The notes under the pieces: generated by a model
Told to the model about the DNA's origin: nothing
What the model saw: only the letters and a program-made list of their open reading frames with translations
Databases searched by the model: none
Position numbers and translations under genes: made by a program
Sequence record: MT446416.1
Direction: 5' to 3' (one strand)
Length of the DNA stretch: 64,000 bases
Shown: in pieces, positions 54,991 to 61,597 of the stretch
Layout: every line of letters starts with the position of its first letter
How positions within the stretch are numbered: the first letter of the stretch is position 1

Positions 54991-55827
54991 ATGGCAATGA
55001 ACCCACTAGCTAAGTATACTAAAATTGAAGAACTTGGTACAAAATTGGTCACAAATGGCGTGATTCCTTATAAAGAAGGAGTTCTTGGCTCTAAAGGTAT
55101 CAAATGTGGCATTTGTGCTCGTAGTGCACGTGATGAAATGACACTCAATACACCAGATATGCTTCTAAATGGTGATGCAATTGCTCGTGTTATTGAAAAC
55201 TGCGTACCTAACGTACTTGATGCAGATGAACTTTATGTAAATGACGTAGAGCTACTACTTATCGCTATTAAAGTAGCTTCTAAAGAAGAATCATATGATA
55301 TTAATGTGACATGCCCTGAATGTAACAAAGAAGGCCGTTTTGAGCGTAGCTTATCATATCTACTAGAAACAGCACAAACTTTCAGTGAAGTTCCTACTGT
55401 GCAATTGGATAATGGACTAAGTTTAGAGTTTAGACCACTTACTTGGAAGGAATATTCTAACTTCGCAGAAAGAATGTTTACAGAACAACAAAAAACTAAA
55501 TTCCTTGAAACTGCCGAAATGGAGCAGGAAGAAAAAGTTAAAGTGTTTGGTGAAGTATTTGAAAGTATGGCACAACTCAACTTTGATATGATCGCAGGAG
55601 TTATTGCTAAGGTAATTACACCTGAAGGTGATGAAGTAACTGAAAACGAATTCATTTCTGAATGGCTAGGTCAGCAGTCCAAAGGAACACTTAAAATAAT
55701 TCGTGAAAAAATGGATGAAGTACTTGAAATTGGTGTTTCCCATACTATGGAAGTTGAATGCAGTGACTGTAATCATCAATGGGAAATTAATGGACTGAAA
55801 TATGACCCAAGTCATTTTTTCGCATAA
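54991..55827 (+). CDS. gp26: Baseplate hub assembly chaperone (gp26-like)
   Basis: NPL.KY, DEMTLNTPD.LLNGDA..VIENC, LLIAIK.AS, CPEC..CSDC, ends HFFA. Confidence 0.75.
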   Translation: MAMNPLAKYTKIEELGTKLVTNGVIPYKEGVLGSKGIKCGICARSARDEMTLNTPDMLLNGDAIARVIENCVPNVLDADELYVNDVELLLIAIKVASKEESYDINVTCPECNKEGRFERSLSYLLETAQTFSEVPTVQLDNGLSLEFRPLTWKEYSNFAERMFTEQQKTKFLETAEMEQEEKVKVFGEVFESMAQLNFDMIAGVIAKVITPEGDEVTENEFISEWLGQQSKGTLKIIREKMDEVLEIGVSHTMEVECSDCNHQWEINGLKYDPSHFFA

Positions 55828-56036
55828 TGCTTCTCCACTCATCTCCTGAAGAAATACAAGAAGTACTTAAGGAATTTGAGTTGAATAAGTCAGATATTAA
55901 AACTGCATTAATGGAGTGTTCTGTTTATATGGAAAGTGTTGATTACGGAACACTACTTAATATGCCACTAATTGATAGAGACTTATTAGTTAAGTCTTTT
56001 AATAAGAAAATTAAAAAACAAAACGAGAAGCACTAA
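55827..56036 (+). CDS. gp51-like small protein (possibly a -1 frameshift extension of gp26)
   Basis: LLNMPLIDRDLLVK motif; TAATG overlap; T TTT TTC at 55815. Confidence 0.6.
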   Translation: MLLHSSPEEIQEVLKEFELNKSDIKTALMECSVYMESVDYGTLLNMPLIDRDLLVKSFNKKIKKQNEKH

Positions 56037-56045
56037 CTCACAAGG

Positions 56046-56075
56046 AGCCAGCACATTGTTGCTGGTTTTTTTTTT
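56046..56075 (+). terminator. intrinsic terminator
   Basis: CCAGCA/TGCTGG stem followed by T10. Confidence 0.8.
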
Positions 56076-56294
56076 GGTTTTAAACTACAGAATTGATTGA
56101 ATTGAATTTTGAAAGGAATTAATTATTTTATAGTGAACTCATCTAACTCATTTCATTCGTTAGCTGAAGAATATTCGTTACTACGTAACTCATATTCATT
56201 TCTTATAATTAATTATAAAGAACTTTAAAAGATTTAATACTTGACGGGATTTGTTGAAGACATTTTCATCCCCCCGCAGGGGAATGAAGACAAT

Positions 56295-56747
56295 AAAAAA
56301 GAGACAATTAAGTCTCTTAATTCTTGACGCTGATGGTTTCAGCATTTATTGTATTGCGAATTTCTTAAAATTCATTAAGAACGAAAGCGGGTTGCTCTGT
56401 TTCTCTCTATCGCAGTCATGTGCAACGGTCGTCAGTCTTAATCATCCTGACACTCACCTGAAAGTCTATACAATCAAACTTCAGGCTGTTTATTAAATCA
56501 CTTAATAAACTCCCTTAGCAAATCTGGTAAGGTGCGATCCTTATACATCTATCGAGGAACTCTCTGTATGCTTATCGGAGTTCTTTATTGAGCCGTGTCG
56601 CCGTGAGGGGTTCAAACTATGCCCACATCTAACGGGTTTCTTCTGCTCATCGCACTGTTGAACTGCTCATCTGCCATCTACATTTTCGATAGGATCAGGT
56701 TCTAATTTATATGCATTTCTGCATTCAACAGGATTGTCATCACTACA
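56295..56747 (-). ncRNA. candidate ~450 nt structured non-coding RNA
   Basis: Own promoter (56754-56782), terminator AAGAGAC/GTCTCTT plus T run (56295-56318), at least six hairpins, no minus-strand ORF of 60 aa or more. Confidence 0.55.
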
Positions 56748-56753
56748 ATTAAC

Positions 56754-56782
56754 ATTATAGCACCAAATTCAAAAGTGTCTCA
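56754..56782 (-). promoter_or_regulatory. promoter TGAGAC-N17-TATAAT firing into non-coding DNA
   Basis: Read directly. Confidence 0.7.
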
Positions 56783-56875
56783 CTATTATGGTAAAAAATT
56801 TATAAAAAGTACATAATTCTTGTTATCTGAAGTAACGCATAAATATTTTGATAAGAATTAGTTTAGTGGGGATTT

Positions 56876-57370
56876 ATGAAGAAAAGATTAAAAGATAGTA
56901 AAGAAGCTGCAAACTATCGAAATGAATTACTAAAGAAGCAAAAAGGAATTGATCCTATAATTAAGGAACCAATAACTAAGCCAGTACTTGATCACTATCA
57001 CTTCGAGAATCAACACTGTCGCGGGGTACTCCAGAATGAGATAAACGCCTTTGAGGGTAAGGTTTCCAACGCATGGAACCGATATGGAAAGCATTTAACT
57101 GATATGCCATTACATGAAGTACTAAGAAATCTGGCAGATTATCTTGAAAAGAACAATAACATTCCACCTGAAGAGCAAGTCATACATCACACTGCACTAA
57201 CTGTGGATGTTAATAAGTTTAAAAGGCTTCCAGCAACACAGCAAAACGCGATTCTGGAAGGGTTAGGAGTTGTCCCTGGTAGTAACGTCAAGGAGAGAAC
57301 TAAGCAAGCCAGAAGGCTCATTAAGGACGGTAAATTAAATATGGTAGATGTAAAAAGAGATACAAAATGA
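56876..57370 (+). CDS. gp49: Recombination endonuclease VII-like
   Basis: KKQKG...VLDHYH...RGVL...NAFEG aligns with T4 EndoVII; catalytic D, H, N, E kept. Confidence 0.72.
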   Translation: MKKRLKDSKEAANYRNELLKKQKGIDPIIKEPITKPVLDHYHFENQHCRGVLQNEINAFEGKVSNAWNRYGKHLTDMPLHEVLRNLADYLEKNNNIPPEEQVIHHTALTVDVNKFKRLPATQQNAILEGLGVVPGSNVKERTKQARRLIKDGKLNMVDVKRDTK

Positions 57371-58389
57371 AAATATCATTACCAAACGAAATAAACTTAA
57401 AACACATAAATTACAATACAAAAATGCCACAAGAATATTTTGATGATTTAAGTAAGAGATTATCAAAATATGACATTATTTTTAATGGATTTATAATTGA
57501 AGATGAATGGAAAGGTAATAACACGTTAACTTCTATAGAATGTGAAGGAAACCTCTACAACAACTATCGAATTAATAAATTATACAGATATATTAAACGT
57601 ATGGATACAAAAGGATATCAGAAACCTAAAGGTTTTAACTTAACCCCTGAACTATTGGTACAAAACGTCAACGATGAATGTATAAAACGTGGTGGTAAGA
57701 TTGAATTTATTGGTTATAAACAATTTAATGGTGCAAAAACATATTTGGAATTGAAATGTAATGATTTGGAATCACATGATGAACCATATGAGTGGTGTTC
57801 AACGATTTATGATAGTTTTGTCGGAAACAATAGACATTTGAATGGTTGTCATAAATGTTCAGGTAGATATCATTACACTATAGAAGAACTTAACAATAAT
57901 ATAAATTATTTTTGTGAAACACGTGGATTCGTAAACCCAGTATTGATAACTAATGAAACTATGAATGGTGTTAATAGTATTGTTTCATTCACCTGTCATT
58001 GTGGTGAGAAAGCAACGATGACATATGATAGTTTATCACGTGCTCGTTTTTGTATATTATGCAGCGAAGGTAGTTATAAACAATATATTCCTGGTTCATT
58101 GTATGTATTAGAAGTATATAAAAATGATAAACATGTGGCATATAAATTTGGTATATCAAACTATGTCCCAAAACGCCTCATGGAATATGGAAAATCTCCA
58201 TGTAATGTTAAGATTATTCATCAATATGATTTTGAAGATGGTTCTATTCCATATAAAATTGAAAATAAAATAAAAAACTCATTACCAATCAGATATCTTA
58301 CCAAAAATGAGTTCGGTGTAGGATATACAGAAACGATAGATACAACTTTATACGAAGATTTAATTAATATTATAAAAAAGGGAGCATAA
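57367..58389 (+). mobile_element. free-standing putative homing endonuclease (C-terminal GIY-YIG-like domain)
   Basis: CHKC, CHC, CILC; SLYVLE...YKFGISNYVPKR; IENKIK..GYTETI. Confidence 0.65.
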
Positions 58390-60565: not shown

Positions 60566-61597
60566 TTATAGTGATCTGTAAATTTGGATTAGAAGATTTT
60601 TATCGAACATAGGTGAATCAATTTCCATGATTTGTTGTAACACAATCTCATCAACTGACTCAGTACTTTCAAAGCTTTCACCATCTTCAATAAGTTCTTT
60701 GATACTTTGCTTGCTAGTAACAACGTTAAACTCACGAATGTTATAAAGTTTAGTAAAAGTATCACGAATAAAACTAATCTCATCAGTAGTGATAGCAATA
60801 TCAACTTGAACCTTTGAAATAGTATTGTCTTGAAGATAGTAACTTGGATCTGTTAATAGTTCTGAAAGTGTAAATGTTCTATATTTTGGTGCTTCTGACC
60901 AAGAATGGAAAGTTGGTTCTTTACCATGTTCTAAAATCATCACACCTCTTGCATCATCCCATGTATCAGAAAAGTTATGTGGGAAACAGTTACCTGTGTA
61001 AATTACACGAGTTCCTTTAGATGTTGTTTTTGCTTGTCTCTTGTGGAAATGTCCACTAAAAACATACTCACAACCACCAAAAGAACCTTCAGTCTCTTTA
61101 CCATGATCTGGCATCTCAACCATTTTATTGAGCAAGTATCCAGGTAACTCTAAGTGACCAAAAACATACTTACTTTTAAGTTGAGGTAGAACTTTGTATT
61201 CATCTTCAATCATAAATGGAATGAAAGTACAATCATCAAATGTTGTGATTTCATTAATGAACTCGATGTTCTCATAAACTTGTGCCATATTAATACTAGT
61301 AATGTCACGTTTATTTTTATGATACATGTCATGGTTCCCAACTAAGAAGTAAACCTTATCGAAGTTGTCATTTAGTAATTGTAGAATTTGTAAACCATAG
61401 TTTAATGTTTGAATGTTAATATTACTGCGGTTATGGAAGTAATCTCCCATAAACACGCATACAGTAATACCATTTTTCTTAGCAAGTTCAATCATAAACT
61501 TGATGAAGTTCAAACAATCTTCGTTGTGCTGCTTGCTGTTATTCTTTAATCCTAAATGAATATCAGTAAATGTAATTGCTTTATCAAATAGAGCCAT
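60566..61597 (-). CDS. gp47: Mre11/SbcD-like nuclease (gp47)
   Basis: FTDIHLG, GDYFHNR, VGNHD, GHLE, FSGHFH. Confidence 0.92.
   Translation of the reverse strand: MALFDKAITFTDIHLGLKNNSKQHNEDCLNFIKFMIELAKKNGITVCVFMGDYFHNRSNINIQTLNYGLQILQLLNDNFDKVYFLVGNHDMYHKNKRDITSINMAQVYENIEFINEITTFDDCTFIPFMIEDEYKVLPQLKSKYVFGHLELPGYLLNKMVEMPDHGKETEGSFGGCEYVFSGHFHKRQAKTTSKGTRVIYTGNCFPHNFSDTWDDARGVMILEHGKEPTFHSWSEAPKYRTFTLSELLTDPSYYLQDNTISKVQVDIAITTDEISFIRDTFTKLYNIREFNVVTSKQSIKELIEDGESFESTESVDEIVLQQIMEIDSPMFDKNLLIQIYRSL

Follow-up and report, generated by a model that had tools for sequence, protein, structure and literature searches.

What is encoded in the largest interval free of open reading frames (ORFs) in a segment of a jumbo phage genome? 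The question is raised by positions 56295-56782 of a 64,000-nucleotide stretch of sequence record MT446416.1 (hereafter the window, meaning that whole stretch; window position 56040 is position 261765 of the record). The record, which matches the sequence of the gap over 836 bp at 100% identity, is that of Escherichia virus TH47, an Asteriusvirus and Rak2-like jumbo phage. An initial annotation, made from the letters alone, proposed an unannotated gene, equipped with a promoter and a terminator, for a structured RNA of about 450 nt; this proposal is upheld by covariation in three domains of the RNA, by conservation of the TATAAT box and by the lack of a conserved ORF. The RNA gene does lie at 56295-56782, but the conserved unit is larger, running from about 56783 down to about 56140. 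The interval almost certainly encodes a minus-strand non-coding RNA (ncRNA) with about 16 helices and four pseudoknots, one of four paralogues in TH47 and a member of a family found in Rak2-like phages and in bacterial chromosomal islands. As to function, the module is read here, by analogy with ColE1 RNA II and T4 oriF, as a cis-acting replication-origin unit at its own locus whose transcript would serve as a pre-primer; this reading is tentative and could well be wrong. Among the candidate functions listed in the initial annotation, that of an origin primer is thus weakly favoured.

Every Rak2-like jumbo phage examined carries the RNA, in 3-5 copies. The gap is 92-99% identical in other Asteriusvirus jumbo phages (for example 121Q, PBECO4, G17 and fEgEco12), and two related genomes, when searched at the DNA level, each showed four homologous places, with 72-82% identity and in a single orientation. 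In the phage collection 72 records match, all of them Rak2-like jumbo phages, with hosts in Escherichia, Salmonella, Klebsiella, Erwinia, Yersinia, Serratia, Cronobacter, Pectobacterium and Xanthomonas. Counted by blast, a record contains 4-5 such places, except that the Klebsiella phages have 1-2, while searches of whole records gave five copies in Munch, Serratia phage BF, GAP32, XbC2 and four IMG/VR genomes, four in G17, TH47 and the IMG/VR genome G005, and three in RaK2. The TH47 copies lie at 49.5, 146.2, 262.1 (the window copy) and 345.7 kb, all on the minus strand. The copy between the endonuclease VII gene and the baseplate hub gene is syntenic across genera, and in a tree of 50 copies the paralogue clades likewise span genera, with types A and B orthologous throughout and types C, D and E partly homogenised within lineages.

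Comparison of these copies reveals an elaborate fold. An all-against-all column scan over an alignment of 50 copies from 11 genomes recovered both nested helices and long-range pairings, and pairs were counted on three tool-aligned domains, namely A2 (5'), A3 (middle) and A1 (3'). The structured core, supported by pair counts, covariation and an excess of G-U pairs, spans 56325-56747 on the minus strand and corresponds to RNA positions 1-423, where RNA position p is window coordinate 56748 minus p. The RNA measures about 453 nt from the promoter to terminator T1 and about 510 nt up to the second of two CGUCAAG repeats. Its roughly 16 helices, the four pseudoknots (PK1-PK4) included, are arranged around many invariant unpaired nucleotides. 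In RNA coordinates these are P1/PK1 (17-24/86-93), P2 (50-60/70-77), P3 (82-84/94-96), P4 (99-103/155-159), P5 (113-116/144-147), PK4 (150-152/201-203), P6 (165-170/186-191), P7 (205-208/217-220), the variable P8 (238-259), P9 (261-272/281-292), PK2 (274-280/394-400), P10 (296-298/316-318), P11/PK3 (322-326/353-357), P12 (334-338/389-393), P13 (341-345/361-365), P14 (368-372/381-385) and P15 (405-409/415-419). All six stems named in the initial annotation are present, as P15, P14, P10, P9, P8 and P6, and five of the six are reproduced over the 50 homologues. Compensatory changes occur in P6, P9, P10 and P14; P8 is too variable for column-wise counting, and P15 is a hairpin in every copy with a register that shifts among copies. 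The direct repeat of CTGCTCATC at 56643 and 56663, to which the initial annotation also drew attention, is real and its units lie in the 5' strands of P3 and P4, but it is confined to the TH47/G17 lineage and no conserved repeat occurs there elsewhere.

The covariation is strong in all three domains. In A2, 91.0% of alignment cells are paired and the covariation score is 0.400 against 0.135 for shuffled controls (0/500), with slid controls at or below 0.091; in A3 the figures are 92.3% and 0.452 against 0.133 (0/500), and in A1 they are 89.1% and 0.493 against 0.177 (0/500), with 427 doubly changed cells where 121 were expected. Over the three domains together, slid controls did not exceed 0.097. 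Pairing is preserved by changes on both sides in 71 of the 89 pairs tested, long-range pseudoknots included. In PK1 the 5' strand CUGUUGAA pairs with the P3 loop; an alternative, in which the 5' CUGAUUGA would pair with the CGUCAG repeat at the 3' end, was discarded, as the covariation scan assigns that strand to the P3 loop. PK2 joins the P9 loop AUUGUAU to AUACAAU, which lies 114 nt further downstream (97.6% of cells paired, six of seven pairs compensated), the loop sequences varying among paralogues yet matching inside each copy, and the B-type copies that have no P9 also have no PK2 partner sequence. PK3, in which GUUGC pairs with GCAAC across P12 and P13, is paired in 100% of cells. Moreover, G-U cells (359) outnumber A-C cells (82), as at G273-U280, a G-U pair in 41 of 41 copies; because conserved G-U pairs would read as A-C on the other strand, the minus strand is the one transcribed. 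Folded as a single sequence, the RNA has a minimum free energy (MFE) z-score of -2.55, with one of 100 shuffles folding equally well, a modest value on its own, so the case rests on the comparative covariation. A further observation concerns a sub-motif of about 35 nt, (G)UACAAUAUAGAUCCGUCCAAAAUUUGAG, which is inserted in P8 (about RNA 240-258) or P14 (368-385) depending on the paralogue, as in the G17 255-kb copy (L006) and the 93-kb copy of phage BF (L038), and in both places in G17_255; its appearance is that of a portable module for tertiary contacts or for protein binding.

These pairs also bear on whether the interval is an RNA gene at all. A repeated DNA element, such as a protein-binding, recombination or packaging signal, could contain helices by accident, or the interval could encode small proteins; some records annotate short hypothetical coding sequences (CDSs) or a 'repeat_region' over the interval (for example fEgEco12 for the former and UE-S1 for the latter; most database records carry no annotation in the gap). 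The gap, rightly singled out at the outset as the largest ORF-free interval of about 840 bp, measures 839 bp from the stop of the ORF at 55827-56036 to the endonuclease VII start at 56876; when only ORFs of at least 90 aa are counted, it measures 1048 bp and is the largest gap of the window, the runner-up being 520 bp. ORFs inside it are all of 81 aa or less, and on neither strand is one conserved in position or frame across the copies, whose indels are not multiples of three. For example, the G17 copy, though 95% identical, already has a broken version of the antisense ORF that is 81 aa long in TH47. Similarly, a short frame after GGGGGGAUG that seemed conserved by eye was rejected, as the spacing there is 14, 15 or 16 nt depending on the copy, which leaves no reading frame. 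With 71 of 89 pairs compensated and conserved G-U pairs besides, an explanation by DNA signals or coding sequence is highly improbable and, on comparative grounds, effectively refuted by covariation.

No match to an RNA family already described was found. The initial annotation recognised no hallmarks of tRNA, tmRNA, RNase P or group I introns, in agreement with ARAGORN, which finds no tRNA or tmRNA gene in the window, and with Rfam 15, which gives no match over the whole window at gathering thresholds. At the locus itself, E values up to 10 return only terminator-like hits outside the RNA body or at its 3' edge, far below gathering, and ten other copies (from phages and one island) give no match at E up to 0.1. 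This negative result spans GOLLD, ROOL, HEARO, OLE, RNase P, tmRNA, group I and II introns and 6S. Two of the comparisons on which the initial annotation had staked its claim, covariation and Rfam, therefore went its way, the former being strong and the latter yielding no clear family match. A group I intron was rejected on further grounds, since the element lies between genes and every copy has a promoter of its own 6-40 nt ahead of P1. The distant relative PA5oct has four ncRNAs defined by RNA sequencing, and nhmmer found no homology to the region of its ncRNA001 and ncRNA002, nor did the covariance model match anywhere in the PA5oct genome. Searches of the literature, and of terms within the genome papers on PA5oct, UE-S1 and CBB, found no description of the RNA family. 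As such, with no defining feature of a known RNA family present and no prior description found in the sources searched, the RNA is rated as a new class.

An RNA of this architecture invites an explanation in which it acts in trans. The RNA exceeds 420 nt and combines four covarying pseudoknots with peripheral hairpins that GAAA caps and with long joining regions that do not vary, which is the signature of catalytic or scaffold RNAs such as RNase P, group I introns and GOLLD/ROOL (bioRxiv 10.1101/2024.12.08.627333). The RNA could accordingly be a ribozyme, or a scaffold made of RNA only or of ribonucleoprotein (RNP), produced in the middle phase of infection, with its copies supplying dosage or specialised variants. 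The terminator that directly follows the folded core in several copies agrees with such a product, and PK2 loops that are specific to each paralogue and matched within a copy would fit homo-oligomeric kissing contacts as well. This explanation is possible, though doubtful, and what it leaves unexplained lies in the flanks and the placement of the RNA.

The promoter is conserved along with the fold. A consensus scan places it at 56754-56783 on the minus strand, where 17 nt separate a -35-like TGAGAC (56782-56777) from the -10 box TATAAT (56759-56754) and TG stands at the end of this spacer (TGcTATAAT), and thereby confirms the leftward consensus promoter of the initial annotation (minus-strand GTGAGA/GAGACA, then a TG-extended TATAAT; score 10/12). 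TATAAT is present in all 28 copies of the first alignment, mostly preceded by TG, and a TG(A/G)(A/G)AC box lies 17 nt upstream. This promoter class, a divergent RpoD-like 'TGAAAC(G)/TGGGAC' type used by the phages, has 31 members in the complete relative G001, every one of them on the main coding strand, and five of these drive the RNA. In phage CBB a divergent class in which TGAAACG replaces TTGACA was described at 18 sites, 11 of them upstream of a region that includes DNA-synthesis genes, and it occurs in GAP32 too (PMC5259590). The promoter of the RNA is thus a regular phage promoter, probably of the middle type. The window holds six promoters of the class on its minus strand (12480, 18903, 29699, 38596, 56790 and 62517), which provide a usable map of the probable middle promoters of the phage; in addition, 12 of the 13 TGNTATAAT motifs in the window are on the minus strand.

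At the other end of the RNA, the intrinsic terminator T1 (AGAGAC-UUAAUU-GUCUCU followed by U6; 56295-56317, minus strand) is supported by a terminator scan, by alignment and by an MFE fold. It is the terminator that had been placed at 56295-56318, where the scan reports a minus-strand hit at 56318-56299 and then a T-run. C- and D-type copies have T1, B-type copies have a variant of it, and types A and E lack it. The A-type copies in turn have a terminator-like 5' leader hairpin (GGACAGC...GCUGUCC UUUUUU) immediately 3' of the -10 box and ahead of P1, as in the 30-kb copy of BF (L040) and the 41-kb copy of Munch (L037).

Conservation does not stop at T1 but runs about 250 nt beyond it, so that the conserved unit as a whole forms a self-contained module some 650-700 bp long. 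A promoter of the TGAAAC class and the RNA come first, then a terminator that some copies lack, a C4/G6 hairpin, the repeated CGUCA(A/G), an AT-rich stretch and GNA-triloop hairpins. The first CGUCAAG, identified in alignments at 56323-56329 on the minus strand, lies at the 3' edge of P15. The aligned C4/G6 hairpin (P16, 56265-56288, minus strand) reads UUCAUUCCCC-UGCG-GGGGGAUGAA, contains the near-invariant GGGGGGAUG, is paired in 41-50 of the 50 copies depending on the pair and has no U-run after it; its invariant G6 run occupies RNA 473-478. The second CGUCAAG (56240-56246, minus strand), also found in alignments, lies 3' of this hairpin within the conserved block ACAAAUCCCGUCAAG, in the context ACAAAUCNCGUCA(A/G). 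Other genera have CGUCAG and RaK2 has CUUCAAG, both copies of the repeat changing in step between lineages. Directly after repeat 2 the composition becomes very AT-rich (56190-56239, minus strand; from about RNA 509), with a GC content of 0.17 at 56180-56237 in TH47 and an average of 0.22-0.25 for the first 40 nt past the repeat in the 50 copies. The RNA core has a GC content of 0.41, its immediate flanks 0.17-0.26 and the whole window 0.36, which agrees with the earlier remark that the interval is richer in GC than its flanks. Finally, the downstream alignment shows hairpins flanking AACGAAUAUUCUUCAG (56143-56189, minus strand), namely GUUAC-GUA-GUAAC at 56189-56177, a C-GNA-G triloop, and CUAAC...GUUAG at 56163-56143. 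At least one perfect C-GNA-G hairpin of at least 4 bp occurs within 220 nt in 37 of 50 copies, against 0.02 per copy after shuffling.

In many copies a near-match to ATAAATA follows directly on the second CGUCA(A/G), at 56240-56232 and equivalent places, and is followed by AT-rich sequence. ATAAATA is the late-promoter motif proposed for CBB and GAP32 (PMC5259590), and a late promoter here might start a short second transcript across the triloop hairpins. The T4-type late promoter TATAAATA is not enriched in the window, with five found against 7.8 expected.

It is this downstream sequence that gives the tentative origin reading its first support, as a terminated RNA acting in trans would not need conserved non-coding sequence beyond T1, which argues for action at the locus. 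In the proposed mechanism, host RNA polymerase would start at the middle-type promoter and the folded transcript would act as a pre-primer, analogous to RNA II of ColE1. A persistent RNA-DNA hybrid would be seeded at the G-run and the AT-rich region, about 470-550 nt downstream, and the T4-like phage replisome would extend it, as at T4 oriF and oriG. Forks would then leave each module along the direction of transcription, which is that of most genes. In favour of an origin, the promoter class lies mostly upstream of the DNA-synthesis region in CBB, and T4 oriF and oriG likewise consist of a promoter and AT-rich DNA. For a trans-acting ribozyme or scaffold, the downstream sequence could be regarded as a 3' extension or a processing region, but that explanation does not account for 250 conserved nucleotides past a terminator.

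The placement of the copies points the same way. Every phage copy is on the main coding strand (67 of the 79 ORFs of the window; about 85% of ORFs in G001, a genome almost entirely of plus-strand orientation), and this holds for the window copy though it is antisense to its immediate neighbours. In eight genomes with five copies, these are evenly spaced around the circle, with gaps of 49-86 kb, minimum gaps of 49-67 kb and P values of 0.0004-0.01 under random placement; as the five-copy genomes share ancestry, this amounts to about one observation and not to eight independent tests. All five paralogues are kept in several genera, which fits each locus being needed. A diffusible RNA would not need fixed, spaced and co-oriented positions or the retention of all copies, so these features too argue for action at the locus, and forks running with transcription would fit the orientation rule. 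Even, syntenic spacing, retained copies and the fixed orientation of an antisense copy are accordingly left unexplained by a ribozyme or scaffold. The copies do not adjoin tRNA genes, the nearest in G001 being 4.5 kb away; a tRNA cluster of that genome includes, according to ARAGORN, a tRNA with a four-base anticodon (ctgg; L112:1949-2034, at about 301.9 kb).

The same orientation would also suit a cis-acting transcription element, in which the nascent RNA makes its own polymerase resistant to termination, as HK022 put does, or in which the module is an infection-responsive expression cassette that drives long co-directional arrays of phage genes, and island genes after infection. In its favour, a promoter of the phage class immediately precedes the RNA, a terminator comes next in several copies, and all copies are co-oriented with long gene arrays. 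However, only five of the 31 promoters of the class in G001 carry the RNA, and known antiterminator RNAs are 70-120 nt long. There is no conserved boxA/boxB-type consensus, a boxA-like sequence being visible by eye only in TH47. Moreover, the window copy faces a convergent operon and a bidirectional terminator, with no sense gene downstream for 1.2 kb. That operon, on the plus strand, comprises a T4-type baseplate hub gene and the 69-aa ORF that follows it, the latter bordering the gap opposite the endonuclease VII gene. Its terminator at 56042-56075 (plus strand; terminator scan, with a terminator annotated at the same place in G17) borders the module and is outside the RNA family. A role in transcription is thus unlikely, although the islands described next offer it one more argument.

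Beyond phages, prokaryotes were scanned for exact patterns, one genome per species, and full-length modules turned up in four bacteria, namely Citrobacter amalonaticus, Serratia fonticola, a Serratia sp. and an Enterobacteriaceae metagenome-assembled genome (MAG), with one copy each. A pattern hit in a Pantoea MAG (L146) was a chance match with no module. By blast, two of 5,426 complete E. coli genomes match, and the one whose annotation was inspected has nothing annotated there; no copy was found in the plasmid collection. In each case the module occupies one edge of an AT-rich island that lies within GC-rich core DNA and is 10-18 kb long in the two cases measured, and it reads inward in the four islands of the pattern scan. 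The islands include those of C. amalonaticus P55 (L154:1846-11148), S. fonticola (L156:2800 to L150:5000) and E. coli LR-29-1, beside ffs (L158:9997-20341). Their integrases are of the large serine type, except for a disrupted tyrosine integrase beside ffs in E. coli. Several islands also carry CI-like or Cro-like regulators, a DNA invertase, ParB-like proteins or defence-type genes; no replication gene is recognisable in the islands annotated. A guide RNA of a transposon (the omega RNAs of IscB and TnpB, or the IS110 bridge RNA) was considered and rejected, since the neighbours differ for each phage copy and neither HEARO nor any other Rfam family matches. In that test three island copies lay by large serine integrases and the E. 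coli island had its tyrosine integrase, and the phage copies had none.

The island copies keep the promoter, all helices with compensatory changes of their own, the G-run hairpin, both repeats and the triloop hairpins, and they fall in at least three different phage paralogue clades, so that the module has been exchanged repeatedly and acquired at least three times. Of the ORFs that adjoin island modules, one was compared with phages, the 165-aa ORF of the Citrobacter island; it has no homologue among them, so that at least in this case the module seems to have moved alone. Capture of the whole cassette by small islands again argues for action at the locus, and islands that bear the module would, under the origin reading, be replicated upon infection by such a phage. 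They may be satellites of Rak2-like jumbo phages, or defence islands that respond to them. A trans-acting ribozyme or scaffold does not predict that islands would take up the whole module, promoter and downstream part included. A transcription element agrees with modules at island edges that read inward, and with the convergence of the module with a CI-like repressor gene in the Citrobacter and Enterobacteriaceae MAG islands.

The contents of the islands raise one further explanation, that of an RNA that acts in trans for counter-defence or host takeover, whether as decoy, sponge or inhibitor, with the island copies as decoys or dominant-negative competitors directed against the phage. In the Citrobacter island there are a GmrSD defence gene and a Cro-like regulator, and in that of S. 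fonticola a defence-like HNH nuclease and an IrrE-like protein with helix-turn-helix and peptidase parts; a DNA invertase is present in all three fully annotated islands and a CI-like repressor in two of them (Citrobacter and S. fonticola). Furthermore, the RNA family is confined to mobile elements. However, there is no identifiable target, the positional regularities and the downstream conservation go unexplained, and copies that keep every structural feature through their own compensatory changes do not look like degenerate decoys. Such a role is considered quite unlikely.

Several points weigh against the module being a replication origin. A fold with four pseudoknots and many invariant unpaired bases far exceeds the needs of any known primer RNA and has an intricacy typical of ribozymes or RNP scaffolds. 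T1 lies upstream of the G-run and the AT-rich stretch in the window copy and the other copies of types C and D, so most transcripts would end before the proposed hybrid site. No conserved antisense promoter of the RNA I type was found, the plus-strand sites at 56324-56352 and 56447-56474 lying in helices that vary between copies. Even spacing is marginal in TH47 (P 0.047), and the copies are not evenly spaced in G17 (P 0.06) or RaK2 (P 0.13). GC skew in a complete 366-kb relative tracks gene orientation and shows no signal at the five sites, but a unidirectional, co-oriented model predicts no skew signal either, so this neither supports nor refutes an origin. Contigs of two RNA libraries (X2 and X4; wastewater, 'whole organism metagenome') match 56243-56797, including exact pieces of 227-252 nt, and contigs of paralogues occur as well. 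The same libraries hold 18-45% of a 10-kb stretch of structural genes and their contigs show neither strand nor ends; they are compatible with transcription but are not specific to the locus and do not prove a discrete RNA.

If the origin reading is right, it would answer how phage genomes of 350 kb start replication. A bolder form of it, in which each jumbo phage origin is marked by a homologous folded pre-primer RNA, perhaps with a self-made primer end, and in which islands have repeatedly pirated the cassette, is rather unlikely. If true, origin RNAs would gain a new class and the islands would be the first satellite-like elements of such phages to be defined by a non-coding module; the pirating islands would be replicated, and perhaps spread, on jumbo phage infection. 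If the origin reading is wrong, the RNA becomes a strong candidate for a new ribozyme or RNA machine. Large RNAs with such conserved tertiary architecture are rare, and most have proved to be ribozymes, guide RNAs or unusual assemblies. This one is abundant in well-sampled coliphages that are therapeutic candidates, yet unannotated in most records examined, and its 3-5 diverged natural variants per genome already map the fold. The genome-wide placement suggests that the RNA acts where it is encoded, and its presence in bacterial islands as well suggests that jumbo phages interact with chromosomal elements in a way not recognised so far.

One neighbouring insertion was also observed. Between the endonuclease VII gene and an SbcC-like gene, the window has a 340-aa ORF (57367-58389, plus strand) that is not at this place in fEgEco12, G17 or UE-S1 and bears a MUG113 domain, which we take to be related to GIY-YIG. 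It is probably a free-standing insertion of the homing-endonuclease type. An inverted match of 45 nt between 57470-57514 and 61192-61236 (76%) hints at a paralogue nearby.

How does the module compare with known systems? The putL and putR sites of HK022 are paralogous cis-acting RNAs just downstream of phage promoters and upstream of terminators. They are about 70 nt long with two stem-loops, whereas the phage RNA is six times larger and pseudoknotted, and the window copy has no downstream sense gene. RNA II of ColE1/pMB1 is about 500-550 nt long, starts at a sigma-70-type promoter, must fold, and hybridises near a G/C-run before an AT-rich start site; the cassette of promoter, RNA and origin is autonomous wherever it is placed. 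The module resembles it in having a promoter, a folded RNA of about 470 nt, a G-run and AT-rich DNA in that order, a likeness that is one of analogy. It differs in that the phage RNA has no sequence or structural homology or Rfam match to RNA II and is pseudoknotted, and in that the element is multicopy in a lytic genome, with a terminator before the G-run in several copies.

GOLLD and ROOL are usually single-copy and often lie beside tRNA genes. Like the present RNA, they are large, elaborately folded ncRNAs of phages and prophages, supported by covariation and of unknown function. The phage RNA differs from them in showing no homology, with no Rfam match even at E 10, in its 3-5 copies per genome and in not lying by tRNAs.

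Phage T4 has at least five origins, among which oriF and oriG consist of a middle-mode promoter and a downstream AT-rich unwinding element; their transcript primes leading-strand synthesis via an R-loop, and origin plasmids replicate in infected cells (PMC3016281). The comparison also takes in oriE, the early-promoter origin of T4. The T4 origins have neither a sequence motif in common nor a structured RNA, and about 100 bp suffice for them, whereas the phage modules are all homologous, and the T4 AT-rich element lies within about 100 bp of its promoter whereas that of the module (GC 0.17-0.25) lies about 500 nt downstream, past the folded RNA. The likenesses are nevertheless several. These are T4-related phages with a T4-like replisome, and their module combines an AT-rich stretch with a promoter of the variant -35 class whose sequence (TGAGAC/TGAAAC, 17 nt, TG-extended TATAAT) resembles a T4-type middle-mode promoter, its timing being judged by promoter class. 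Finally, as with the several origins of T4 and the plasmids that carry them, there are 4-5 copies of the module per genome and the module is carried by islands.

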